Positions 4,977 to 61,354 of a DNA stretch of 64,000 bases are shown here, piece by piece. Origin of the DNA: Camelus dromedarius. Lineage: Eukaryota. The position numbers were made by a program, and so were the translations under genes. The notes under the pieces were generated by a model that saw only the letters and a program-made list of their open reading frames with translations, did no database searches and was not told the DNA's origin. The stretch lies in contig NC_087454.1 in NCBI RefSeq assembly GCF_036321535.1, forward strand, positions 19,034,001 to 19,098,000, written 5' to 3'. The stretch's first letter is position 1. Every line of letters begins with the position of its first letter.

Positions 4977-5906
4977 ATGAACTGCAGCAAGAACCCCGAC
5001 TTGGTCCTCTCAGGGCTGTCCAGTGACTCAGAGAAAAGACGGCTGCTCTTCGGTGTCTTCCTGGCCCTCTGCTCGCTGAGCCTCCTAGGGAACTTGCTCC
5101 TGCTCCTGGCCATTGGTGCTGACACCCGCCTCCACACTCCCATGTACTTCTTCCTCAGCCAGCTCTCCCTGGTAGATCTCTGTTTCACCACCACCACAGC
5201 CCCCAAAATGCTGGCGGCTTCGTGGACCGACAATGGATCAATCTCTTTCTCTGAATGTCTGGCCCAACTGTATTTCTTTGCAGTTTTTGCTGATATGGAC
5301 AACCTACTTTTGACGGCCATGGCTATCGACCGCTACGCTACCATCTGCCATCCTCTGCACTATCCACTCCTAATGACTCCCTGCAGATGTGGACTGCTAG
5401 AGGCTGGGTCACGGGGAGTGGCCCACGCTGTCTCTCTTGTGCATGCCCTGTTGCTATCTCAACTATCATTCTATACGAATCAAGACATTCCCCACTTTTT
5501 CTGTGATTTTGGCCCACTCTTTCAACTTTCTTGCTCTGATACCCACTTCAATGAGGACCTGATGATGGTTCTGACAGGACTTTTAGGAATCAGCCCTCTC
5601 CTCTGCACAATAAGTTCTTATGCCCATACTTTCCTTGCTGTAGCTAGGGTCCCATCAGCACAAGGGAAAAAGAAAGCCCTGGCTACATGCAGCTCCCACC
5701 TCTCCATGGTCATCATCTTCTACAGCACAGTCTTTGCCACCTACCTGAAGCCCCCATCAACTTCTTGCTCCTCTGGGGAGCTGGTTGCCGCTGTCATGTA
5801 TAACCTGGTAACTCCCACTCTCAACCCTTTTATTTATAGTCTGAGAAATAAGGATGTGAAGACTTCACTGAGAAGCGTTCTGGGCATACAGAGTTTATGG
5901 GATTAA
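4977..5906 (+). CDS. Olfactory receptor, family 1 (OR1O-like), 309 aa, ORF intact
   Basis: OR motifs LHTPMYFFLSQLS, MAIDRY..ICHPLHY, KALATCSSHL, PFIYSLRNKDVK; ATG 4977, TAA 5904-5906. The subfamily is inferred from the family-1 OR genes in the rodent MHC-linked cluster. Confidence 0.9.
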   Translation: MNCSKNPDLVLSGLSSDSEKRRLLFGVFLALCSLSLLGNLLLLLAIGADTRLHTPMYFFLSQLSLVDLCFTTTTAPKMLAASWTDNGSISFSECLAQLYFFAVFADMDNLLLTAMAIDRYATICHPLHYPLLMTPCRCGLLEAGSRGVAHAVSLVHALLLSQLSFYTNQDIPHFFCDFGPLFQLSCSDTHFNEDLMMVLTGLLGISPLLCTISSYAHTFLAVARVPSAQGKKKALATCSSHLSMVIIFYSTVFATYLKPPSTSCSSGELVAAVMYNLVTPTLNPFIYSLRNKDVKTSLRSVLGIQSLWD

Positions 5907-9983: not shown

Positions 9984-11829
9984 TCCTCCAGAGAGAAATG
10001 TAAGATTTGGGATCCCAAAATGAAGGAAAATAATTTACTGTTATTACCAACAGTGAAGAGTTATACTTAGAAGGAACGAAATCAGTCCTACTTTTTCCTA
10101 TTCCTCTTTTTTGTTTTCTGTAGAGCCACAGTAATAGATAAATAGAATATTAACCGTCTTTCTGTATGGATGGATCAATGGGCTGTCACTGGCCCTCTGT
10201 CCTTAACTGTCATTACCTGATTTCCTTCTGTTTTATGCAGAATTTTTCCCAGAGAAGTTCCCAAGATGAAAAAGTGTGTCAATACCTCTGTCCCATGAAA
10301 TGAACAGTAATATAAACAAGAAAATATGAGGCCATGGAGATTTGTACTGTTTGTGGTTCTGAAACTAAGAAATAAGCATATTAAGGAAAGAAAATAAGAA
10401 AAATGAAAAAAAAAAATGAAACTCAAGATAGGAATTCCCCAAGGAGAATTCTCTTGTATTACAGGCATAGAAAGGCATCTTGTTTACTCTTACAATAACC
10501 CTCTCAAACCCAGGGGACACTCAGGATTTGTATGTCTAGAGATCTGTGGATCATAAAAGACAGGCAGAATTTCAGAAAGAAGAGATTTTGGAAGATGAAG
10601 AGCTTGTGCTGCAATCCCAATGTGATATGTCACTTCAAATATTTTTCTACTATTTACTTTTCAGGAGTATAAAGGTTGGAAAAGCTTTCCTACCTGGGAA
10701 TTTGAACACTCAATCAGGTATGAGAATGAAACAAGAGACAGGCAGGGGAGTTACCCATACTGTCTGTCTTCTTGCTAGAATTAAAGTTAAATGCCCAGGA
10801 TTTAGAGCTGGTTTCCTATCTTATCATGGACTCCTCGCTGTGCTTGTGGATTAGGAAGGCTCTTTACCACCTACATTTTTATTGCTGTATCTCTAGATAT
10901 TCTCTAGAGTAAATATGCATCTGTAACTATTCAGGATGCAGTGAAGTAAATCATCTAGTACAGAAAGTCTGATTGCTAGGAAAAGGGTTTTATTCCCCAG
11001 GTGAATTTTTTAAATGATTTTGTTTTATGGGTCAGAGAACCAAAAATGAGGTCTGGTATATGATTTGTATCTTAAACAAGAGTGATAAATTGTTAACGAT
11101 ATACAAAATAGACACGGCTGTCAAAGAAAGCTACTCTGAATTTCTAGAAGCCATCCTTTCACAGACATGTAATAAATGAAGACAATCTCTCAAATTTTTC
11201 TCAAGCTAGAAAGCCCAGAATCCCAAGGGATCCCCTGAAATGTTCCCTAGTTAATTCACTTTTTTATTCTAGTCACAATAAACATTTTCTTCTCCTTTCA
11301 AGGATTTTCCAAACTTTGAATAATTTCCTTTTTATAACAAATTCTACAGTGTCTGCATCTCTATTCAGGTTTGTTATAGCTCTTATTAGTCTCTTATTTT
11401 CTATTTCCTTAAGCAAAAACCCTTCAGGTAGTCTCTTACTAGGTCAGGAGATAGCAGTGTGGTGGAGTACTTTAAAATGTACCCTGGGTTAGAGCTGAAT
11501 TAGGACGATAAAAAGCAAGTCATATCAGAATGTGGTTCACAGACAGAGAAGATGGTAGGCTGGAAACATGTACTGAATCCCTGGGAGAAAGAAAAATATT
11601 CATGATAAATCTATTTTAAAAAGGGACTGCATAATAGTCCATCACCAACATGTAACCTTAATAATTTATAAGCTAATGATCCAAATATTGTAAAATGGTT
11701 AGTGCTGAGACTATTTAAAACAACAATGCTCTCCCTCAAAATACTGTTGTGTAGGTGGGAGCATCTCAGCTGGAGGACTCTGGTTCCCATTGGAGAGAGC
11801 ATTCCATATATTATTTTGTCTTTTAAGTG

Positions 11830-12756
11830 ATGCTGAATCAAACAACAGTCACTGAATTTCTCCTCCTGGGAGTCACAGACATCCAAGTATTGCAGCCTTT
11901 TCTCTTTGCAGTTTTCCTTGCCATTTACTCTGTTAACGTGGCTGGGAATGGAGCCATCCTGATGATGGTTATTTCTGATCCAAGACTCCATTCTCCTATG
12001 TATTTCTTCCTGGGAAACCTGTCATGTCTGGATATCTGCTACTCCACGGTGACACTGCCAAAGATGCTGGAGAACTTCCTCTNNNNNNNNNNNNNNNNNN
12101 NNNNNNNNNNNNNNNNNNNNNNNNNNNNNNNNNNNNNNNNNNNNNNNNNNNNNNNNNNNNNNNNNNNNNNNNNNNNNNNNNNNNNNNNNNNNNNNNNNNN
12201 NNNNNNNNNNNNNNGTTACACTCTAATCATGAATCACCAGGTCTGTACCCAGATGGCCCTCACTGTCTGGATCATTGGCTTTTCCCACGCCCTGATGCAC
12301 TCCATAATGACCTCTCGCTTGAACTTCTGTGCTTCCAACCAGATCCATCACTTCTTCTGTGACGTTAAGCCATTGCTGGAGTTGGCCTGTGGGAACACTG
12401 AGCTCAACCAGTGGCTGCTCAATACTGTCACAGGGACCTTGGGCATGGCCCCATTCTTTCTAATACTTCTGTCCTATTTCTACATTATTGTCTATCTTTT
12501 CTTCAAGACCCATTCTTGCAGCATGCTTCATAAAGCTCTGTCCACGTGTGCCTCCCACTTCACGGTGGTTGTTCTTTTCTATGTTCCTGTTGTCTTCACT
12601 TATATTTGTCCCGCCTCCAGTAGCTCCATGGACCAGGACCGGATGATTGCCATTATGTACAGTGTGGTCACTCCTGTACTAAATCCACTGATCTATACTT
12701 TGAGAAACAAGGAAGTAAAGGGAGCCTTGAGGAGGGTGATCAGAAGGAGTCTCTGA
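11830..12756 (+). CDS. OR12D2: Olfactory receptor 12D subfamily (OR12D2-like), 308 aa; codons 85-129 hidden by Ns
   Basis: MLNQTTVTEFLLLGVTDIQ...LACGNTELNQWLL...[31 protein letters not shown] matches human OR12D2 as recalled. The true ATG is 11830 (the track starts at a GTG). Intactness within 12083-12214 cannot be seen. Confidence 0.8.
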   Translation: MLNQTTVTEFLLLGVTDIQVLQPFLFAVFLAIYSVNVAGNGAILMMVISDPRLHSPMYFFLGNLSCLDICYSTVTLPKMLENFLXXXXXXXXXXXXXXXXXXXXXXXXXXXXXXXXXXXXXXXXXXXXXYTLIMNHQVCTQMALTVWIIGFSHALMHSIMTSRLNFCASNQIHHFFCDVKPLLELACGNTELNQWLLNTVTGTLGMAPFFLILLSYFYIIVYLFFKTHSCSMLHKALSTCASHFTVVVLFYVPVVFTYICPASSSSMDQDRMIAIMYSVVTPVLNPLIYTLRNKEVKGALRRVIRRSL

Positions 12757-18168: not shown

Positions 18169-19098
18169 TTATTTAATGCAGAGAAGCCTCCGTAGTGCCT
18201 GATGAACCTCCTTATTCCTCAGGGTGTAAATCACAGGATTGAAGAGAGGGGTGACCACAGTGTAGAGCAGGGCAAAGACCTTGGAGAGGAGCTGGGAGTG
18301 GACAGCCGAGGGTGCAATGTACAACACCATGAGAGTTCCATAGAATGTGGACACTACAGCTAGGTGGAAGGAGCACGTGGAGAAAGCCTTTCGTCTGCTG
18401 GCCCCAGCAGGAACTCTCAGAACAGCCAGCACGATGCGGGCATAAGATGTCAGGGTCAGTCCAAAGGGAACAGTGAGGCAGACCACAGAGAGAATGAATG
18501 TTGTCATCTGGGCTGCACTGGGATCTGAGCAGGCCAGGCTCATCAAAGGCATAAAGTCACAGTAAAAGTGGTCAATGTGGTTGAGGCCACAGAATCTCAA
18601 TTGAGCCATTAGGGCCACAACCAGTCCATCTACCATGAAGCCCGAGAGCCAGGCTATGACCACCAGCCCCAAGCACCATTTGGGCCCCATCAGGAGTGGG
18701 TAGCGGAGTGGGTAGCAGATTGCCAGGTAGCGATCATATGCCATGACAGCCAGCAGGAAGCATTCAGCAGTGGCTAGAGAACCAAAGATAAAGAACTGGA
18801 GCAAGCAGCCAGCCACCGAGATGGCTGCCTCCTGCAGGAAGCCCTCCAACATTTTTGGCACCACTGTGGAAGTATAGAGGATCTCCAGGAAGGACAGATT
18901 AGCCAGGAAGAAATACATGGGTGTGTGGAGCCTCTCAGAGCTAACTACTGCCACAATGATGAGCATGTTCCCTGCAATGATGGAGGCGTAGGTGAGCGTG
19001 AACACAATAAAGAAAGGGAGACTCAGTTCAGCTACGTCATAGAAACCAAGAAGGACAAACTCAGTAATAGTCTGGTTGCCAATGGAGACAATTTCCAT
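18169..19098 (-). CDS. OR11A1: Olfactory receptor 11A1, 309 aa
   Basis: MEIVSIGNQTITEFVLLGFYD...PKMLEGFLQEA.ISVAGCLLQFFIFGSLATAEC...SAVHSQLLSKVF matches human OR11A1 as recalled. Likely start is 19098; an upstream in-frame ATG lies at 19107. Confidence 0.92.
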   Translation of the reverse strand: MEIVSIGNQTITEFVLLGFYDVAELSLPFFIVFTLTYASIIAGNMLIIVAVVSSERLHTPMYFFLANLSFLEILYTSTVVPKMLEGFLQEAAISVAGCLLQFFIFGSLATAECFLLAVMAYDRYLAICYPLRYPLLMGPKWCLGLVVIAWLSGFMVDGLVVALMAQLRFCGLNHIDHFYCDFMPLMSLACSDPSAAQMTTFILSVVCLTVPFGLTLTSYARIVLAVLRVPAGASRRKAFSTCSFHLAVVSTFYGTLMVLYIAPSAVHSQLLSKVFALLYTVVTPLFNPVIYTLRNKEVHQALRRLLCIK

Positions 19099-20318
19099 GA
19101 GGATCATCCAAGTTTCTGCTTGGCAGTGATTAAGGGAGAAATTTTAGTGCATCTTTGTATCTTCTGCACCAATCCTGAGGTAAGTAGAGCTACGATGAAA
19201 AAGATAAAAGTGAGTCTCCAAAACAAGAATCATCTACACAAGTCCTCATCTGTCCCCCTTTATAGTTGCTTACACCTTTTCCAACTCCTGTTCTTCCCTG
19301 CATTCCTTAATTGTGCATATTCTTGAAGCCCCAAGAGAATTTATTCAAACTCATCATTTCAGTCTTCAGAGCCCTTTAACTTAATAGTTCAATGTAACAC
19401 TTTTATGATACAATAAATTTCACCACCCTAGTCTGTACAACCAGCCATAGAGCCTTTCTCATGAGCAACAGTGTAATACCCTCCCAATGCCTGTAAGACA
19501 TGTTCTATCAACTCAAAATTGGCCTGATCACAACCAGCTCCAATGAGAGTGGTTTGAAAACTCCACCTGATACCCAAGCTTGCTATATTATAGTCATCTT
19601 TATCTTAGTACTATCTCTCATTCCTCATACCCCAATCCGTGAAATCTTATCAATTGTTGCTTGGAAAATGCCTATATATTCCCTCTTCACTGTCGCACCA
19701 TTAATCTCACAACCTCTTTGCAACTATCTTAGCACACTTGCTCTCTGTGTAGCCTTCTAGTCTCCAGATTGATTGCCCTCTCCCATCTCAAAAAAATTTT
19801 AAATACTAGTTTCATCAAATCATTCAAGATTTTGTAGTGCAAATGTGATAAATCATAACATTGAGAAAAGTGTAGATGCTGTGGGAGCAGAGAGATCAAA
19901 CACAGACTGGGAGAGGAGGAGGGTGTGAGAATAGAGGTCAGAGAAGGCTCCCTGAAGAAGATAGTTGTAGGCTGTTTTGGAGGACAGATAAGAGTTGGCC
20001 AGGCAAAGGACAGGCATATAAGCATAGCATTCCAAGCAGGAGAGACATAAGTGAAAGCAAAGATGTGTAATTGAGTTCTTGAAGAGCTAAAAAATGGATC
20101 TGTGTACCTGCAAGGAAGATCTCATATGCTATCTGAAGGGACCTGTGTGTTTTATATTAAAAACAATGAGGATACATTAAATGATTGGAAGCAGAGGGGA
20201 AAGGTACAGAAAAAATGCAGATTTTCCTGTGTGTCTGTGTGTGTGTGTGTAGTAAAATAAAAAAAATCTTCTAGCAGAATTTGTGAAAATATGGTTGCCA
20301 TCTGTTTGGGAGTGTTTT

Positions 20319-22780: not shown

Positions 22781-23689
22781 ATGGAGAGAGCCAGCCGCAC
22801 ACTGGTCACTGATTTTGTCTTCGTGAGATTTTCCAACTCTCCAAGGGTTCAGCTGCTCTTTTTCTCCCTCTTCCTCCTGATCCACCTCTCATCTCTGGTG
22901 GGCAGTGCACTCATTGTGCACACTGCGGCTGTGGATGGGCGCCTCCACACTCCCATGTACCTCTTTATCTGCAATCTCTCCTTAGTAGAGCTCTGGTACA
23001 CCACGGTGACTGTGCCCAAAATGCCGGCCAATTCTCTAAATTCCCAAGGGGTCATCTCAGGTCTCAGCCACATCAGCCAGTACTACTTCTTCTCTTTGGC
23101 CACCGCAGAGCTCTTCATTCTCACCACCATGGCCTTTGATGTGGCACTGCCATCTGCCAACCATTCCTCTACCCACTGCTGCTCAGCCCTCAGACTTGGG
23201 GTTCTCTGGCTGGGTCTGCTGGCTTGTGGGATTCCTCTGGCCCATGTTCCCCTCATTCCTTCTTACACAAATCTCCTTCTGCACCCCCAACCAGATCAAC
23301 TGATGCCAATCAGACTTTCCGCCTTTCTTGCACAGACACGTATGCCATCCTAACAGTGGGCTATGCTTTTAGCACTGTCACTATCCTAGAGGCCCTGGTC
23401 TTTACCATGGCTTCCTATGCCCCAGTCCTGACCACAATTCCAGCCATGGCCTCGGCCGCTGCTCGACGCAAGGCCTTTTATACATGTGCAGCCCATCTTT
23501 CTGTGGTCACCATCAACTTCAGTACTCTGGTATTCATGTATGTCCCCCACAGTAAAGTATGAGTCAAATGTCCACAAGATTGTGGCTATCTTCTACTCAG
23601 TCATCACCCCACTTCTCAATCCTCTCATCTATACACTCCGTAACAAAGATGTCAAGGAAACTGTGAAGGTGTTGGTGTCCCAGATCTAA
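22781..23689 (+). pseudogene. Olfactory receptor pseudogene (family 6/11-like)
   Basis: [47 protein letters not shown] and [16 protein letters not shown] fall in different frames. Frame breaks near 23140 (in the MAxDRY motif), 23310 and 23550. Confidence 0.88.
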
Positions 23690-41253: not shown

Positions 41254-42330
41254 TGTTGAACTAGCATCAACAACTAGGCTGCAAAAAACAAAAAGCTTTC
41301 TTTGGGAGTCTTAGAAATTGCAGTTTGAGAGACACGGATTCTGGTAAAACCAAAAGAGTGTTCTAGGAAAGAGAAAGAGTCAGGGCAAAAGCCACAAGGT
41401 GGTTAAAATTGTTTTGCAAGAATTATGATTGACTCTGACACTAAAAAGAAACTTTTGTCCTTAAGGGATAGACTGTCATGGGTTATTTAGGGTCAGGGTC
41501 CATAAATATCTTTATGATCAACTATTTTATTATTTTTGCATCAGCACTGACTTCCTTGACTCTGGGAAGGCTCATTCTCAGAAAGTCATGTCCCATGGAG
41601 GACAGAAAGGGGTGGTTGTGTGAGTGGTCTGCTTCATAAAGCTTACAGGCACATTTGAGCAAGAAGGAAGGGCATCTTAGGTGGTGTCCAAAACAGAAGA
41701 ATTTCATGGATCTTCATTAGGAAAACTGTTATAGGAGTGATCAGTCATCTCCAGACATCAAGCTATCATCATTCCTGTGGAGGGCATCATAATACAGCAT
41801 CAAGAGATATAAAGCATTAACAACTCGTGGAATACACAGACAGTAATTAATATTGCAAGAATCAATAGTAATGTCATAAGCAAAGATTTTAGCCAGCTAT
41901 CACCTGAGCCAAACTAACCTTTTGATCTCCAAGACTGGGTATTGGATCATTCATAACATTTGTTTGCTTTTTCATATGACTTACCAAGTGGGTGACAGTA
42001 GATGATTCATCTGGTGTGAAAACACAGCATCCAGTTTGTACTATAGCACAGATACCACCCTGAGAGACCAGAACAATGTTAAGAGCCATCGGATTTTGTA
42101 AGACTGCCTCTCTTATTAAAGGTATTTCAGAATATAAAAGATTTATAGCTTGGTGGCTGTCATTTAGGTCTTGTTGGATAAATTTAGGTAAAGCTTCTGT
42201 AAAATAATGACATCTTCAAGTCCCAGTGAGGGAATAAAAATAGCTGCCAAATTATCATACCAGTGAAAGACTGACCTAGCCCATCTTGTTTTTGACAAGA
42301 GGGAATCTGCAGGGGCCATATTGAGGGTTA
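41254..42330 (-). mobile_element. ERV1-type env TM remnant plus probable 3' LTR
   Basis: Minus frame IREAVLQNPMALNIVLVSQGGICAIVQTGCCVFTPDES contains the immunosuppressive domain and CX6CC (about 41990-42115). LTR-like U3/R sequence ends ...GTTCAACA at 41254. The LTR start is uncertain. Confidence 0.7.
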
Positions 42331-42469
42331 TACAGATATGCCCCTGAGTGCAAGGAAATCCTAAGGTGCAACATCCTATCTATGCAGGAAGGATCCAAAG
42401 CCAGAGGTTAGTTCCACAAAGCTATTGCGTTCCATTTAGAGCTACACATTACATACTGGTCATCCATCC

Positions 42470-43800
42470 CAATCAAGAAGACCAATGGAACAGAACTGAG
42501 AGCCCAGAAATAAACACATGTATTTGTGGTCAACTCATATTTGACAAGGGAGCCAAGAGTACTCAACAGGGAAATGATAGTCCCCTTAATAAATGGTGCT
42601 GGGAAAACTGGAAATCCACATGCAGAAAATGGACTCTCTCTCATACCACTTCCAAAAACTAACAGAAATGGTTTAAAGATTTAAATGTAAGACCTGAAAC
42701 CATACTACTTCTAGAATAAAACAAAGAGAAAAGGGTCCTTGACATCTGTCTTGGCAATGATACTAGATATGTCACATAAAGCATAAGCAACAAATAAAAA
42801 CTCAGCGTGTGCGACTGTATCAAACTAAACATCTGCACAGCNNNNNNNNNNNNNNNNNNNNNNNNNNNNNNNNNNNNNNNNNNNNNNNNNNNNNNNNNNN
42901 NNNNNNNNNNNNNNNNNNNNNNNNNNNNNNNNNNNNNNNNNNNNNNNNNNNNNNNNNNNNNNNNNNNNNNNNNNNNNNNNNNNNNNNNNNNNNNNNNNNN
43001 NTACTGATTAAAAAATGGACAAAGGATCTGAGTAGACATATTTCCAAAGACATACAAATAGCTACCAGGAGCATGAAAAGTGCTTGACATCACTAACCAA
43101 CAGGGAAATGCAAATCAAAACACCATGAGATATCACCCTACACTTGTTAGATTACGTGACAAGTAAGATACCAAGTGTTGCCTGGGATGTGGAGAAAAAA
43201 GAACCCTGGTGTACTATTAGTGGAAATGTAAATTGGTACATATATGTGTGTGTGCATTTTATATATTTAAATACGTGAATATTTATATATATTGTTTATA
43301 TGTATATGTATAAAGGAATATTATTCAACCATAAAAAAGAAGGAAATCTTGCCATTTGTTACAACGTGAATGTACTTAAGGACATCATGTAAGTAAAATA
43401 AGTCAAACAGAAAAAGACAAATACTGTACAGCATCATTGATAAATGGAATCTAAAAACATTAAACTCATACAAAGAGAAGAACATTGGTTGTCAGGGGCT
43501 GAGGGGTAAGAGAAGGGGAGAGATGATGTTCTGAAGGCACAAATCTTCAGTTTCAGAATGGTAAGTTCTGGGGACCTAATGTGCTGTGTGGTGACTATAG
43601 TTAACAATATTGTCCTGATTACTTAAAAGTTGCTATGAGAGTAGCAACAAAATGATAATTATGTGAGATGAAGAATGTGCTAACTGCCCTGAGCGTGGTA
43701 ATCACTTCACAGTATATAGGTGTATCAAATCACAACATTGTACACCTTAAACCTACACAATGTTATTGTGTATAATGTCTATTATGTATCTCAATAAAAC
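42470..43800 (+). mobile_element. L1 ORF2 3' end and 3' UTR, decayed
   Basis: [35 protein letters not shown] and an L1 3' UTR ending in aataaaa; N gap at 42842-43001. Confidence 0.88.
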
Positions 43801-45106
43801 TGGAAAAGATAAAAACTCAAATTAGTGCTCATGAGTGTAAAGTGGAACTTCTCAGCAGACTATGGCTATTTCTCCAGCCACAATCAGCTGAACAAATGTA
43901 GGGAAAGGACTGGATCTGGATTGGATTTCAACAGGAACATTGATAGTATGTGTGCAAAGGAGTAATTGTAACGACTGACCAGGGAAAATCTGAGCTATAG
44001 AGAGAGAGAAGTGAAGATGTGAGGGAGGTGAAGGACAGTGATAAATGTCCAGATGCCCACTGAGGAAGGAACTGAGAGGAGGCAGTATAAAGTCTAATCT
44101 CCATGGATACCAAATTCACCGAGAATTATTATGGTAGCAGCACTGGAGAGAGTGAGAGTGAGTCAGGGACAAAATCTTCAAGGAATAAAGAGGAGCAAAG
44201 GGATGAGGTGGGGGGTGACAGCAAAGGAGGGTTAGTGGGCAAAACCAATGACATGAAGGTCAACGCTGCATTCAAAACTGAGGATGACGTCATCGAAACT
44301 ACAACATCTCCCCCGGGTAAGGGTTGCTACCCACGTTTTACAGATAATGGCACTGAGACTCACTGAGGTTAAACAGCTGGCTTAAGGTCACTCAACCAGA
44401 GAACGAAATCCTAAACCAGTTAAAAAAAAAGAGCAGTGATGACAGTGAGAAGGAATTTCACACACTGCCAGGGACACTACCCGAAAGGAAATTTCCCTCT
44501 AGAAGTTTCCCTTCCTTACCCTGAGGGAGCCCTCTCTGGACACCTCCACACAAAAGACTAATGAGAGAGGGACATAGATTCCCCAGGGCTCCATCCTCTT
44601 TTCTAATAACAGGGAAAATTGATTCCCCTGCTTCATCCTGAGTAAGAGGCTTATCAACACCCTTCCTCTTTCTCTACAGCTGCTGTGCCCTTCAGAATCA
44701 GGAAGGGTATTTTTGCTGCCACCACCAGCTAACACTGATTTGCCACCACCACAAGGATCAAGTCCTTGCCTTGTCTATACCTCGTTCCAAGGCTCTCCAG
44801 GAACACACATCACCACCTCTGTCTGGATCTCAATGTTTCACAGGACTTAAGGGGCTTCTTGCCCTAAGACATTCTATTCATTCTTCTGCTGACCAGCAAA
44901 GAAGGCACTACCCCCATCCACGTCTTCTTCCTGAGGTCCGCGCTCTGATCTCAGGCACCCATTCCAGAAATCAACAGTCATGAGACCGGGTCTTTCTTTC
45001 ATCCCTCCCACTGCCGTTGTAAACCCAGAGAACCCAGAACAGGGGCAAGAGACCAACTTCCCACCTGGAAACTGAAGGCCTAAATATTAGTGCCAGAGAA
45101 TAAGCT

Positions 45107-45112
45107 ATGAAG
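45107..45112 (+). CDS. OR2I1: OR2I1 coding exon 1 (Met-Lys only)
   Basis: taagctATGAAG|gtaggt has a purine at -3 and a strong donor. The phase-0 join to 47329 gives MK-ANQS..., matching the N-terminus I recall for human OR2I1P (MKANYSAEERFLLLGFSDW). Splicing is inferred. Confidence 0.78.
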
Positions 45113-45589
45113 GTAGGTTCATTACTATATTATCTTTTCTTAGAATGGTCTTACATATGCATGACACATTCTAGAATACCAAATGAGGTGTGGAGACACA
45201 GTATAGAATATTAGTTACAACTGATTTGTGTTCTGGATGCCTGAGGGGAATTATGGGCTGTGTGTATGTACAAATGTGTCTGGGCTATGTGTTTGGGAAT
45301 TCATGCATACACGTAGCAATTTGATCACTGTGTGCCTGTTTTCAGGGTTTGGTATGTTTGGAGAAGAATGACTTAAGGCCTGGCTGAACTAGCGTGTGTC
45401 TATGTCATCACAGAGTCAGAAAATTTGACTTTTTGTAACTCAGCATCTCTAGCACCACTGGACCATAAGCCTGAATGCCAACTCTCATGCTTCAGTCATC
45501 TCCAGTATAAATATAAAATTACCTAGACATGAAAGTCAGTCTTTGTACGTGCTTTTATCCTTCACAGTCCCCAGCATATTAGATAGAGC

Positions 45590-46070
45590 CAGGTTTATAA
45601 ACAGAGCAAGGATCTCGGAATTAGTCATATTTAGGTTGAAATCCTGATAAGCATTTACAAACCATGTGACCTTGGGCAAGTTATTTAACCTCAGTTACCC
45701 TCCTATCTTACTGTCTAAAATATGAGTATTATCTAATTTTCAGATGAGTAAAGATCAGAGTTAATATATGAAAAGGGATATAAATTTACATACCAATTCT
45801 GTCCTTACTGGATGTAGGAACCCTCTAAATACCTGTTTCCTCATGTGAAATAGGGATCATAGTTACTATTTATTAAACGGCTACTGTAAGTCAGGCACTG
45901 GTCTAAGAGCTTCACGCGTTTGACCTACTTAACCAGTTCTATTTTTATATGAGGAAACTGGGGCCCAGAGAGTTTAAGCAATATTGCCCAAGGCTGCTCA
46001 GCTAGGAAATGGCAGAACCAAGACTGAAACTCAGGCAGTCTGACCCCCCAATGCTGTTTTTAATCACAAT
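45590..46070. mobile_element. MIR fragments in the OR2I1 intron
   Basis: gtgaccttgggcaagttatttaacctc and gaggaaactggggcccagagagtttaagcaatattgcccaaggc MIR motifs. Confidence 0.65.
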
Positions 46071-47328
46071 ATTAGTACTTGTTCTGCTTAAAGAGGATAA
46101 AACCAGAGAACCATATAAACATAACATTTTGTTAAGGGGAAGAGAGTTCTTTCCTGATTAAAAAAAAAAATAGGGGATTATGATTCTTGAATTAAGAACA
46201 GTGAATATTATCTATATAATGATACTGTCAGGAACCATGCAGTAGAAAGATTTCTATGTATCCTTTATCCATTGCATCAATCTTGGTGTTTTCAGTACCT
46301 TTAGGAAATTTGATTCAGCATCACTCTCAAGGGTTAAAAGGCTTCTACATCGACATTTCATTTGTTTAAAAAAAAATCTATTAAAATTAGAGCCAGAAAG
46401 GTGGTACAGGAAACAGAGGTCTAGTTCAAACTCCTCCTTTCACACTTGAAAACATTGAGGTGAAGGGAAGTGAAGTGACTTCCTCATATCAAATCACTAG
46501 CCAAAGGCAGTTATGCTAGGTGGAACTCAGGCCTCCTGACTTTCATTTTAGCGTTCTTTCCTCTACCCAGATAACTCTGACTTTAAAGGCTGGTACACAT
46601 GTGCTGTCTGTGTTGATCGTGATCATCACACTAGACAGTAAGCAGGAGAGGCATGGACATTGGAAGCAGCCTAGAAGAGAGATTCACCACAGATTAAAAT
46701 TCAGTAGTCAGTGGTAATAATGGGTTGTATTAATAGAAGTAGAGCACCTGAAACAAAGAAGGTGACAGTTCTCATTTACCAAAAATGTTGGTTATACCAA
46801 ACTGAGGGTATTACACATGTTTTTAGGCACTACACATTTCAAAGAAGGGGTTGGGAGCTCAGAGTGAAATCTGTCTTCAAATATTTGAAGGGTTATTGTA
46901 GTGGGGGTTGGAGATTCGATTTCTACTTTGGTCCCTAGGAGTACAAGCAGAAGCAGGGAAGCAGCTGAAAAACACTGATTTTGGAAATCAGACAGGCTAA
47001 GTAAAGCCCATAGGGCCACTCATTAGCTATGACCTTGAGATGCTTCAGCCTTTTGAGCCCAAGTTCGTTCATTTATAAAATAGAGATTGTATCTCCCTCA
47101 TAGAATCTGGTAAATATATCAACTAAGATAACTAATATAAGGTTACCTTCCTAAACTAAAGGTTCAGATCTGTCAAGGAGCTTACAATGGATACATAAGC
47201 ATCGTGTGTGCTTCCATCCCTTCCCCCGCCCCACCCCCAATTGCCCTGGTTTTCCTTCGCTTTTAAGGGATAACCTCACCCTTTTGTATGTCGTCCTTTC
47301 AAACGTTCTGGGAGTTTTCCTCCTTTAG

Positions 47329-48270
47329 GCCAACCAGAGCACAGAGGAGCGCTTCCTCCTGCTGGGTTTCTCGGACTGGCCCTCCCTGCAGCCTGTCCTC
47401 TTCGCCCTTGTCCTTTTCTGCTACCTCCTGACCCTGACTGGGAATTCGGCGCTTGCACTGCTGGCTGCGCGCGACCCGCGCCTGCACACGCCCATGTACT
47501 ACTTCCTCTGCCACCTGGCCCTGGTGGACGCGGGCTTCACCACGAGCGTGGTGCCACCGCTGCTGGCCAGCCTGCGCGGCCGGGCGCTGTGGCTGCAGCG
47601 CGGCGGCTGCCTGGCCCAGCTGTGCGCGTCGCTGGCTCTGGGCTCGGCCGAGTGCGTCCTGCTGGCGGTGATGGCGCTGGACCGCGCGGCCGCCGTGTGC
47701 CGCCCGCTGCGCTACGCCGGGCTCGCCTCGCCGCGCCTCTGCCGCGCGCTGGCCGGCGCCTCCTGGCTGGGCGGCCTCACCAACTCGGCGGCGCAGACGG
47801 CCCTCCTGGCCTCGCGGCCGCTGTGCCCGCCCCACCAGGTGGACCACTTCATCTGCGAGCTGCCCGCGCTACTCAAATTGGCCTGCGGCGGCGGCCGGGA
47901 CATCCCAGAGCGCCAGATGTTTGCTGCCCGGGTAGTCATCCTGCTGCTGCCATCCGCTGTCATCTTGGCCTCCTATGCTGCGGTGGCCCGCGCTGTAAGG
48001 GGCATGAGGACCACAGGGAGCCGCAGGAAAGCGGTGGGCACCTGTGGGTCCCACCTGACAGCCGTCTGCCTGTTCTATGGCTCAGCCATCTACACCTACC
48101 TGCAACCCACGCTCGGCTACAACCAGGGACACGGCAAGTTCGTTTCACTTTTCTACACCGTAGTCACACCCGCCCTCAACCCACTCATCTACACCCTCAG
48201 GAATAAGGAAGTGAAGGGGGCAGCGAGGAGGCTCCTGGGGAGTCTTGGGAGAGGGCACGCTGGACAGTGA
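47329..48270 (+). CDS. OR2I1: OR2I1 coding exon 2 (313 aa + stop); intact
   Basis: Acceptor ttttcctcctttag|GCC; open frame ANQSTEERFLLLGFSDWPSLQPVLF...MALDRAAAVCRPLRY...[30 protein letters not shown]. The in-frame codon just upstream is TAG, so there is no ATG in this exon before residue about 58. Confidence 0.9.
   Translation, partial: ANQSTEERFLLLGFSDWPSLQPVLFALVLFCYLLTLTGNSALALLAARDPRLHTPMYYFLCHLALVDAGFTTSVVPPLLASLRGRALWLQRGGCLAQLCASLALGSAECVLLAVMALDRAAAVCRPLRYAGLASPRLCRALAGASWLGGLTNSAAQTALLASRPLCPPHQVDHFICELPALLKLACGGGRDIPERQMFAARVVILLLPSAVILASYAAVARAVRGMRTTGSRRKAVGTCGSHLTAVCLFYGSAIYTYLQPTLGYNQGHGKFVSLFYTVVTPALNPLIYTLRNKEVKGAARRLLGSLGRGHAGQ
47370..47940. promoter_or_regulatory. CpG island within the OR2I1 coding exon
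   Basis: Visibly very high GC with dense CG dinucleotides (e.g. gcgcgcgacccgcgcc, ccgcgcggccgccg) against AT-rich, CpG-poor flanks. Confidence 0.8.
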
Positions 48271-49906
48271 GCGTATCTGGTAGGGAACGAAGTGTTACCC
48301 CAGGGCCCAAGGATGGGATGCCCACTGGAAAGTCAGTCAGTTTAGCCTTCAGGCTGTTCATTTCTGAATGACAGTCTGCAAGATTTGCGCTCACAGAAGC
48401 CAAGGGGAATGGGGGAGATCCTTTCCTCCCGAGGATCAGGAAAGGTTCATTGCTGTAGGGAGAACCCCTACAGCCATGTACATGCAGGTTTAATGAGGGG
48501 GAAATGGCTTTCAGGTTTTCTCCTAAGCTGATGAAGAAAGTTTGATTTCTGGAAGACCTTCCCCATCCACAGAGGACACTATAACCACCTAGGAGGAATC
48601 CATATGCTGGAAAGATGGTTTGGTGTGATTCCAGTCTGATGGAAGAGATCATGAAAGACCTCATGGTGCCTGTCACCAAAAGTGTCCCCCAAAATGGCAA
48701 GAGAATCATAAACTCTGCCCTGCAGGAGTCCCCATCCAGAAGAAGAAACCATGGTCTCTCATCTCAGGGAATCAGTCCAACCTAATGCTCACCTAGCCAG
48801 GGGACTGACTAGTGCCCACCACAGAGCACTTGACCCAGAGGTGTAATGAGGAACACCTACAAGTCTGGTTTGTGCTGAGTGGGGGTAGAGTTGGGAAACT
48901 CTTCTGCAGAAAGTGGTTCTTGAGCAAGTTATAAAGAAGAGAAGAGACTAAATTAGTGGAGTAGGCAGGCATAACTTAGGCTGTGAGAAAAACATGCATG
49001 TGATCAGTAAGGAGACATGAGGCATTGAGATGGAGGAGTAAACGAAGGTAGAAACATGGGAGAAGCAGAGAGGGAAAAGCTCCATTAGCCAGAACTTGGG
49101 CAGAGTGCTGGGGTTCAACCCAGAAACCAACACTACTTCCTTCATCCAACCCAGAGAAGACCTGCTAGACCTTAAGGCAGGCAGGACAGAAACTGGTCCA
49201 CAATCCCCCACCTCTCAGAAAGTCCGTTCCCTCCCGAAGCACATCTGTTCCCAAGAAGCCCCTACTAGAGACATAAAATCTCTAGATCCCCAAGGTAAAT
49301 ATCTTGCCATGCCCACCATCATCCCCAGAAATATGAATAGTTTAATTGGGTGTGAGACAGAGAATAAGAGGGGGCACGGTGCCAAGTTTCGTTTCATACC
49401 AAACAGCTTTAGATAAGGAAAGGAGAAGTAGTTCGACTGAATTTCTAAATTATTTATGAATAAGGTTAGAATGATGTTAAAGTAATTAATTCACTTCAAA
49501 ATAAACCATTTCACTGTTCTATACTAAATGGAAAGTCAGCTTGGTTCAACGATTAGTGAGTAATATGATACACGAAGCACACAGACAACAAACACAGAAT
49601 TTAGTAAAACATAGGTCCCAACCTAAAACTTATTTTATTGTTGGATAGGAAAAGAAATAGGAGTTTTTCTAAGAATCAGAGGGAACCAAGAAAGGATTAA
49701 ATGTTATTCCCTGTCCTGAAACTTATTCAATCATGTTAGAATCAAGGAATCAAAGAGTCAGAAATATGCTACAGTCTTCCTCCCGAGTCCAGACCAAATC
49801 TTCTTTCTACTGATCTTTCTCATTAATTTGGGGACATTATCAGTAATGTGAGCAATTATTAGTGAGTAAGAAGTAGTCGAAAATAAGGCCATTTTTTTTA
49901 TTGCTG

Positions 49907-50374
49907 TCACCCGCCAATGCAGTGAGGTGTCAGAAAGAGTATATTGCCCTTTCTGATGCCATAATCTCCCAGGATCTTCCCATCTTCCAATCTTTTTCCA
50001 TTGCAAGTCACAATCTGCTTCTTAGGAATTATAGCGGTCTTCGCCTTAATCATCTCCTTCACCTGGGCCACTGAGCTGGACCTCCGCACCTGGAGGAGGT
50101 GCCTCTGCCCCTCAGCACCTGACTCCACCAAAACCAATGGCAGCTCCTCATCACTGGGCTTCACCACCTTCAGGGTGAGGTGGATTGTCGTCTCCTTGTC
50201 GATACCATAAGATGACAGGGTTCTCTGGGGCTTTAGGGTCTTCGAGCCCAGCTGGAGGACCTGCTCCTGCACGGGAATCTTGGTCTTAGACCGGACATGT
50301 TCATTGATCTTCTTCACTCTGTCTTCCAAGTTGGCACTGAAAGTCATTGAATTCCATTGCTCAGAATGGACCAC
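49907..50374 (-). CDS. UBD: Ubiquitin D / FAT10 coding exon 2 (two ubiquitin-like domains, C-terminal diglycine)
   Basis: Acceptor ctttcattgtccag|GTG; VVHSEQWNSMTF...KINEHVRSKTKIPVQEQVL...KVVKPSDEELPL...VTCNGKRLEDGK...HCIGG*. Confidence 0.96.
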   Translation of the reverse strand: MVHSEQWNSMTFSANLEDRVKKINEHVRSKTKIPVQEQVLQLGSKTLKPQRTLSSYGIDKETTIHLTLKVVKPSDEELPLVLVESGAEGQRHLLQVRRSSSVAQVKEMIKAKTAIIPKKQIVTCNGKRLEDGKILGDYGIRKGNILFLTPHCIGG

Positions 50375-51674
50375 CTGGACAATGAAAGCCAAGAGACAGT
50401 TGCTTAGAATGCCTGTCACCTTTTACACCCTTTGTTCCCCCTCCTTAATTGCTCCCATCCTTCACTGCCTATCTGGTCCTCCAGATCCTTTACAACAAGC
50501 TGTGTCCCTCTCTTTTTTGAAACGTCTCTTTTGAAATTTCCAGGTTATAATGCAAGAAAACCAGTCTTATTCCTTTGTAACCATACCTCTTATCCATCCC
50601 AAAATGTTATTAATAATTTCCCACCTTATTTACCTGTCTCCTCAGCAGATAAAGTTTGTCAAATGTCAAAAACTAAATACAACTACAAAGCATCCAAAGA
50701 TGTACACCAGATTCGAAAAACAACTCTCCAAGACTTGATAGACTAGTGAAATACCCACAGGGCTGTCCTCCATGACTGCTTTAGAAGGAAACTCTGTTTA
50801 GGACACATATTCTCTGTACTGTTAATTTCTTTTTTAATATCTGATTGCTTTATAATAGGAACTAATGCATTATAGTGATGCTATGTTCAATATCACCTGT
50901 TCATCTATATTTCCTATGTTTTTATATCTACCTGTTAAAGAATATGATCTCCTCCTTTAATCAGGTCAGGGCCCTATTCACAGAAAGTAGGGACTACATC
51001 TAAGTCTTCCTTCAATATTCTGAAAACGGGGAAGCTAACTCCTGTGCTGTCATTTGAAAGCCTCAGAGGACCTCTTTCAGGCTTCATTCAAAAATATCTT
51101 CCCAATCTATATGCCACCAACATTTCTTCACTGGATGGTCACTTCTCTTTGCTAAGCCTTGCCCTCATTCCACGTTCTCTCTGCAGAGCATATATTCTTA
51201 CATAAGGTAATGTAACAGGTCATTAACAATTTAGGATAAATGATTTTTATGAACCTCTCTTCGGGGAAGAGAAGGAAGCTTAAGTTTGAGAGCCCTGGAC
51301 CGCTAGACAGGATAAGAGGGAAAGAGATCAGGACAATAGTATCATAGTTTCAAATCTCACCATCCTGCTAAGCACAGAGTCCACTCCCACTTCCTATCAT
51401 TTGTCCCTAACAGTGGTCAGTCCAAGATCTCACACAAAAGAGAAATCAGGAACGAAACGACCTGAAATCAGGAACCAAATGACCTGGTTCTCTTCACAGA
51501 AACTTTCTTCACATTCAGTAGCTATCTATCTATGCTTATGTCTCATCCCCTTTGAGATGCCCTCCCAGCCACCCTACCTTCTTGAGCACTGTCCTTCACC
51601 CCTTCCTGACATCTCTCCCCATACCTTGGAAGCCCATTCCCTTCCTCCACCCCCCATTATCAGTCCCAACTCAC

Positions 51675-60415: not shown

Positions 60416-61354
60416 ATGGTCAACCACAGCTCCCCAGCGGACTTCCTCCTTCTGGGCTTCTCTGAATACCCAGGACTTGAAAGAATCCTCTTCGTGCTCG
60501 TCTTAGCTTCCTACCTCATGACTCTGGTGGGCAACACACTTATCATCCTGTTGTNNNNNNNNNNNNNNNNNNNNNNNNNNNNNNNNNNNNNNNNNNNNNN
60601 NNNNNNNNNNNNNNNNNNNNNNNNNNNNNNNNNNNNNNNNNNNNNNNNNNNNNNNNNNNNNNNNNNNNNNNNNNNNNNNNNNNNNNNCTTCCTAGGCTGC
60701 TCAGTCCAGCTCTTCATCTTCCTGTTCCTGGGGACCACAGAATGTGTCCTCTTGACAGTGATGGCCTTTGACCGCTATGTGGCTGTCTGCCAGCCCCTCC
60801 ACTACACCACCGTCATCCACCCTCGCCTCTGCCGGCAGCTGGCGGCCATGGCCTGGGTCATTGGGCTGGTGGAGTCTGTGGTCCAGACACCACCCACCCT
60901 CCGCCTGCCTTTCTGCTCCCACCGGCAGGTGGATGATTTTGTGTGTGAGGTCCCAGCTCTAATTCGACTTTCCTGTGGGGACACCAGCTACAATGAGATC
61001 CAGATGGCTGTCGCCAGTGTCTTCATCTTGGTCGTGCCCCTCAGCCTCATCTTGATTTCCTATGGAGCCATTGCTAGGGCAGTGCTGAGGATTAACTCTG
61101 CCACAGCGTGGAGGAAGGCTTTGGGGACCTGCTCNNNNNNNNNNNNNNNNNNNNNNNNNNNNNNNNNNNNNNNNNNNNNNNNNNNNNNNNNNNNNNNNNN
61201 NNNNNNNNNNNNNNNNNNNNNNNNNNNNNNNNNNNNNNNNNNNNNNNNNNNNNNNNNNNNNNNNNNNNNNNNNNNNNNNNNNNNNNNNNNNNNNNNNNNA
61301 AAGAGGGCATTCAGGAGGTTGCTGGGGAAGGACGTGGATTCCAGGGAGAGCTGA
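60416..61354 (+). CDS. OR2H2: Olfactory receptor 2H subfamily, 312 aa; two segments hidden by Ns
   Basis: MVNHSSP..FLLLGFSE...FLGCSVQLFIFL.LGTTEC...VIGLVESVVQTP...QVDDFVCEVPALIRLSCGDTSYNEIQ. Acceptor ccctctag|gtc precedes the ATG. It sits on the far side of UBD like human OR2H2, though some motifs resemble OR2H1. Confidence 0.8.
   Translation: MVNHSSPADFLLLGFSEYPGLERILFVLVLASYLMTLVGNTLIILLXXXXXXXXXXXXXXXXXXXXXXXXXXXXXXXXXXXXXXXXXXXXXFLGCSVQLFIFLFLGTTECVLLTVMAFDRYVAVCQPLHYTTVIHPRLCRQLAAMAWVIGLVESVVQTPPTLRLPFCSHRQVDDFVCEVPALIRLSCGDTSYNEIQMAVASVFILVVPLSLILISYGAIARAVLRINSATAWRKALGTCXXXXXXXXXXXXXXXXXXXXXXXXXXXXXXXXXXXXXXXXXXXXXXXXXXXXXXXXKRAFRRLLGKDVDSRES

Follow-up and report, generated by a model that had tools for sequence, protein, structure and literature searches.

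How can a gene whose receptor-coding exon has no start codon of its own encode an intact olfactory receptor (OR)? The OR2I1 locus raises this question in a stretch of 64,000 nucleotides (nt) of the dromedary genome (Camelus dromedarius, RefSeq assembly GCF_036321535.1, contig NC_087454.1, positions 19,034,001 to 19,098,000 of the forward strand), here called the window, to which all coordinates below refer. We conclude that OR2I1 is very probably intact, with a coding sequence (CDS) that is split, a Met-Lys start supplied by an exon 2.2 kb upstream and a full receptor as its product. The split OR2I1 is already known and already annotated in the dromedary genome; the comparison reported here extends the documented conservation of its Met-Lys exon and splice sites to four placental superorders.

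Anatomy of the split coding sequence

The main coding exon lies on the plus strand at 47329–48270 and encodes residues 3–315 (ANQSTEERF...GHAGQ), its open frame running for 313 codons (47329–48267) before a TGA stop at 48268–48270. Directly before Ala3 stands a TAG (47326–47328) that is in frame with the receptor open reading frame (ORF) and that forms the end of a splice acceptor, ttttcctcctttAG, whose last base is 47328. The first ATG within the exon, at 47494, encodes Met56 in the PMYYF motif of the second transmembrane segment (TM2). Because of this TAG and the late internal ATG, the main exon has no usable start unless it is spliced, and because the first ATG is that of Met56, a single-exon ORF finder returns a protein of 258 amino acids (aa), the only length given for the OR2I1 main exon in the mechanical ORF list of the window.

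About 2.2 kb 5' of the main exon, the sequence taagctATGAAG/gtaggt (the slash marks the splice boundary) offers a start. The coding end of this first exon is ATG AAG, or Met-Lys, at 45107–45112 on the plus strand, with the ATG at 45107, the final exon base at 45112 and the GTAGGT donor next to it; an in-frame TAA at 45101–45103 precedes the ATG by two codons. Joining 45107–45112 to 47329–48270 takes out a phase-0 GT-AG intron of 2216 nt within the CDS (45113–47328, plus strand) and yields 6 + 942 nt = 948 nt, or 315 aa, with an N-x-S sequon at N4. Our re-reading thus confirmed what the original prediction for this locus had said of the sequence itself, namely the coincidence of the TAG with the acceptor, the ATGAAG/gtaggt boundary, the phase of the intron, the 948-nt CDS of 315 codons for amino acids and the N4 sequon.

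ORs are recognized by an N-terminal N-x-S/T sequon, PMYxFL in TM2, MAYDRY after TM3, KAxxTCxSHL in TM6 and PxLNPxIYxLRN in TM7. Here the NQS, PMYYFL and KAVGTCGSHL motifs are present together with a TM7-type motif, and the Pfam profile 7tm_4 is matched with E = 2e-39 and 136.4 bits (cut-off 27) over profile positions 3–277 of 280, alongside a 7tm_1 match spanning positions 1–260 of 260. The best protein matches to the main exon, from many mammalian orders, are named 'putative olfactory receptor 2I1' and share 82–89% identity with it, and the next paralogue group (OR2Y1/OR10-like) reaches at most 59%. By profile, motifs, closest relatives and neighbourhood the gene falls within the vertebrate ORs and within the OR2I1 orthologous group, and on these relationships we take the locus to be camelid OR2I1, orthologous to human OR2I1P and mouse Olfr94 and a class II, family 2 OR of the cluster linked to the major histocompatibility complex (MHC).

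A start exon this small calls for an estimate of chance. A local scan of the 6 kb 5' of the acceptor (41328–47328), with donors scored by a crude weight matrix, returned 95 phase-0 mini-exons consisting of an ATG and an open frame up to a GT, among which the ATGAAG/gtaggt donor ranks second by that matrix, behind ATG/gtaagt at 43558. An ATG followed in open frame by GT is by itself not beyond chance. Given 95 chance candidates, we rejected sequence alone as proof of the start exon, and the case rests on comparative evidence: what raises this candidate above chance is its orthologous conservation, and also its agreement with the models curated in human and mouse.

Conservation of the Met-Lys exon and the receptor frame

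We compared the dromedary locus with those of Equus asinus, Choloepus didactylus, Trichechus manatus, Ochotona princeps, Daubentonia madagascariensis and Scotinomys teguina, giving seven sequences that represent Laurasiatheria, Euarchontoglires, Xenarthra and Afrotheria, all four placental superorders. The original prediction had named conservation of ATGAAG/GT across mammals as a check on its proposal, and both this boundary and the acceptor AG/G proved invariant at the orthologous position in all seven. The longer sequence ATGAAGGT is likewise identical in 7/7 species, the ~150 bp 5' of it being 77% identical, and the polypyrimidine tract of the acceptor is conserved. Before the acceptor AG, five species have T and two have C, a pattern that fits the constraint on a YAG splice site and not a coding one, so that the in-frame 'stop codon' is a by-product of the acceptor. 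Orthologous introns in the six other species measure 2121–3522 nt, and in every species the spliced CDS is 948 nt long with one terminal stop and no indel.

The ratio of nonsynonymous to synonymous substitution rates (dN/dS), a second check that the original prediction had proposed, was estimated pairwise by the Nei–Gojobori method and ranges from 0.11 to 0.27 over the whole CDS, with a median of 0.18. Codons 3–55, the stretch between the acceptor and the first internal ATG (53 codons in total upstream of that ATG), have a median dN/dS of 0.31, contain no stop or indel and keep the N-x-S sequon in every species. Owing to their location, these codons can be translated only from an upstream start. 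The values indicate that they are under purifying selection, which argues against reading the gene as a truncated pseudogene.

The division of this gene into two coding exons was published in 2020 by Barnes et al. (BMC Genomics 21:196; PMC7055050), with human OR2I1P and mouse Olfr94 as curated examples. In the human transcript ENST00000641137 the ORF has 315 aa and is interrupted after residue 2 by an intron of 2367 bp, and the mouse transcript ENSMUST00000222190 carries a 311-aa ORF with a 2959-bp intron at residue 2 (PMC7055050, Supplementary File 3). Orthology and synteny with UBD mark the human, mouse and camelid genes as the same gene: the camelid ORF equals the human one in length and differs from the mouse one, and the intron lies after residue 2 in all three and is of similar size, at 2216 bp in the camelid. 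The human and mouse genes have transcript support, whereas the camelid gene is known here from its DNA. HAVANA curation treats both curated genes as protein coding, and OR2I1P reaches normalised counts of 147–771 in human olfactory mucosa, far above neighbours such as OR2H2 (PMC7055050). The pseudogene-style name of the human gene stems from its main exon lacking a start.

OR2I1 also has the sequence features by which Barnes et al. (2020) delimited split ORs: an intact ORF of >300 aa over two exons, TM domains without deletion, an initiating Met and splice junction kept in orthologues, and the absence of a conserved downstream Met from which one exon alone could encode the full-length ORF, the first internal Met being residue 56 in 7/7 species. 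It resembles the first class of split ORs in that study (for example Olfr1174-ps, Olfr286-288 and Olfr1358), formerly typed as pseudogenes with a main exon lacking an initiating ATG, and shares with that class a very short first coding exon (1–13 residues), an intron that falls within the extracellular N-terminus, and conservation of the junction. Each split OR arose independently, all being separate events on the human tree (PMC7055050). OR2I1 is set apart from the others by strict one-to-one orthology in the placentals sampled and by a main coding exon that is a CpG island, described below.

Public annotation agrees with the spliced model. The protein available for the dromedary genome (NCBI, UniRef) has 315 aa, begins MKANQSTEERF and is 100% identical to our model, without any sequence difference, and its UniRef cluster mates from Vicugna pacos (XP_072801920.1, 98.1%) and Camelus bactrianus (XP_074205163.1, 99.4%) are both named 'putative olfactory receptor 2I1'. 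For Equus przewalskii, Macaca fascicularis, Papio anubis, Rhinopithecus bieti, Peromyscus leucopus and Myodes glareolus, the OR2I1 models in RefSeq have 258 aa, which is what truncation at Met56 would leave, as though the predictor had overlooked the Met-Lys exon; they bear out the expectation, stated in the original prediction, that single-exon finders would mis-call this gene as truncated. Outside placentals, the OR2I1 model of the tammar wallaby spreads 343 aa over 31 kb and is on that account also multi-exon. Invariant splice sites, purifying selection, an identical public model and the curated human and mouse intron together support the central proposal of the original prediction, an intact OR2I1 with its Met-Lys on an upstream exon.

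Little of this is new biology, since a curated account of the split OR2I1 appeared in 2020 and the model is public for the dromedary. Beyond Barnes et al. (2020), the present comparison contributes an explicit demonstration, made on genomic DNA, of an invariant Met-Lys exon and invariant splice sites at both intron ends across all four placental superorders. In practice, camelid OR repertoires should list OR2I1 among their intact receptors; ORF-based miners will miss or truncate it, as the 258-aa RefSeq models show. A whole-word literature search for 'OR2I1' found nothing relevant, and a further paper, PMC11800647, cites the split-OR study in its references only.

Putative promoter, transcript evidence and the choice of start exon

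The 606 bp ending at the donor (44507–45112) are 71% identical among the seven placentals, and the most invariant part of this alignment, at 44525–44629 on the plus strand, is a putative OR2I1 promoter. It holds a homeodomain-like TAATGA at 44559–44564, which reads TAATTA in the six other species, and, 15 bases past it, an O/E (EBF)-like TCCCCAGGGC at 44580–44589, which places the pair ~520–550 bp 5' of the ATG. Homeodomain and O/E motifs in combination are the usual signature of OR promoters, and the block is most likely a conventional OR promoter. A 3-bp deletion in the camelid converts the TAATTA of the other species to TAATGA.

From this arrangement we infer a conventional route of expression. 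Transcription would begin downstream of the 44525–44629 block, and exon 1 would extend to 45112; once the 2216-nt phase-0 intron was removed, the main exon would supply residues 3–315, and translation from the ATG at 45107 would give a full seven-transmembrane receptor with an N-glycosylation sequon in its extracellular N-terminus. Because a conventional OR promoter is likely, expression would be expected in olfactory sensory neurons, as for other ORs.

Several observations count against an intact receptor that starts at 45107, or against parts of that account. If exon 1 begins at the putative promoter, two upstream ATGs, at 44833 (5 codons) and 44980 (31 codons), precede the start. Both are out of frame with 45107, and the second is present in 6/7 aligned species; upstream ORFs occur in most OR genes (Barnes et al. 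2020, PMC7055050). Use of the junction joining 45112 to 47329 in the dromedary is a prediction from sequence, and the spliced MK start is absent among the Logan-derived ORFs of OR2I1 listed, which range from 256 to 350 aa and of which those inspected are unspliced or truncated forms. In searches of sequencing runs, six contain both the exon-1 region and the main exon, and these six are only guessed to be RNA runs; four runs recorded as RNA contain ~70% of the sampled words of the main exon, and the exon-1 region was found in none of the runs recorded as RNA. At the protein level, the MAYDRY motif after TM3 reads MALDRA (47680–47695), a departure common to all OR2I1 orthologues retrieved. The orthologous loci were picked from models already starting with MK, which makes the constancy of the ATG in part a product of ascertainment; the positions are nonetheless orthologous, because their flanks can be aligned. 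Finally, the predicted N-termini of OR2I1 differ in some species, such as Lepus, Hippopotamus, Meles and Erinaceus, where either loss of the exon or faulty models may be responsible. The hippopotamus model begins MKIRIK..., as if reading through the donor, and the models for mustelids and Lepus continue through the acceptor region.

The divergent predictions lead to the alternative that survives best, although we consider it improbable: that the receptor is intact and the camelid gene takes its start from a different or further 5' exon, with 45107–45112 rarely or never used. Apart from gene predictors giving different N-termini in some species, this idea draws on alternative start mini-exons with good donors at 43558–43560 and 44284–44316. 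Against them, the ATGAAG/GT exon, the sole exon checked for conservation, proved conserved and agrees with the human and mouse curation, in which the junction also follows residue 2, and the public models for the dromedary and two other camelids use MK followed by ANQS. We retain the Met-Lys exon at 45107–45112 as the very probable start of OR2I1.

The UBD neighbour, the CpG-island exon and the wider window

On the minus strand at 49907–50419 lies the main exon of UBD (FAT10), which encodes two ubiquitin-like domains and faces OR2I1 tail-to-tail at 1.6 kb from its stop; the same convergent order of OR2I1 and UBD recurs in donkey, sloth, manatee and pika. The sole plus-strand AATAAA downstream of OR2I1 is at 49500, and because it is the only one, the 3' untranslated regions of OR2I1 and UBD may overlap.

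A CpG island, defined by GC content and the observed-to-expected CpG ratio (o/e) and without strand, coincides with the main coding exon (47300–48050). The exon has a GC content of 0.68 and a CpG o/e of 0.76, rising in the core (47400–47900) to 0.74 and 0.94, with flanks at an o/e of 0.18–0.22. At the six orthologous loci the o/e of the main exon is 0.78–0.86 versus 0.12–0.28 in the introns. A CpG-island coding exon is somewhat unusual for an OR gene and is the only such feature that we saw outside the split start. The human OR2I1P region has been reported as a top hypermethylated region in rectal cancer (PMC9817986).

The strict one-to-one orthology of OR2I1, its conserved CpG-island exon and its convergence with the interferon-inducible UBD prompt the reading that the locus has a second, non-olfactory use, through germline or immune expression or as an intragenic regulatory element, in which protein would be made or not according to whether the tiny ATG exon is included; this we regard as very unlikely. 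We give slightly less credence still to the suggestion of the original prediction that the intron permits tissue-specific control. The split start would then be a regulatory switch, the choice of first exon turning production of a functional receptor on or off; immune or cytokine-treated cells would be one setting, UBD being the neighbour of the gene. Such a switch could draw on a published study of human kidney grafts, where inflammation was accompanied by a joint rise of OR2I1P and UBD transcripts, on the tail-to-tail position of UBD and the conserved CpG island, and on the non-coding isoforms of human OR2I1P (PMC7055050). Convergent neighbouring or overlapping gene models could, however, by themselves make the OR2I1P signal vary with that of UBD if the RNA-seq of the graft study did not distinguish strands, and the conserved upstream block bears an ordinary OR promoter signature. 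Split ORs as a group, moreover, are kept across mammals, are ordinary in expression level and can be expressed as the sole receptor in a mature neuron (Barnes et al., PMC7055050).

Least probable of all is that OR2I1 is a start-less, truncated pseudogene, with a coincidental ATGAAG/GT and at most a 258-aa fragment made from Met56: the late first ATG, the 95 phase-compatible mini-exons that occur by chance, the P of the human symbol and the 258-aa RefSeq models speak for it, but they are outweighed by the invariance of ATGAAGGT at the orthologous site in seven species of four superorders, by selection on codons 3–55 and retention of their sequon, by the preserved length and low dN/dS of the whole ORF, and by the protein-coding status that curators gave the human and mouse genes and high expression in human olfactory mucosa (PMC7055050).

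Further OR genes or fragments of the MHC-linked cluster lie elsewhere in the window, on the plus strand at 4977–5906, 11827–12756, 22781–23353 and 60416–61354 and on the minus strand at 18169–19107. In the ORFs at 11827 and 60416 the second codon is ATG and stretches of N occur, and the one at 22781–23353 matches the N-terminal third of the OR profile only.

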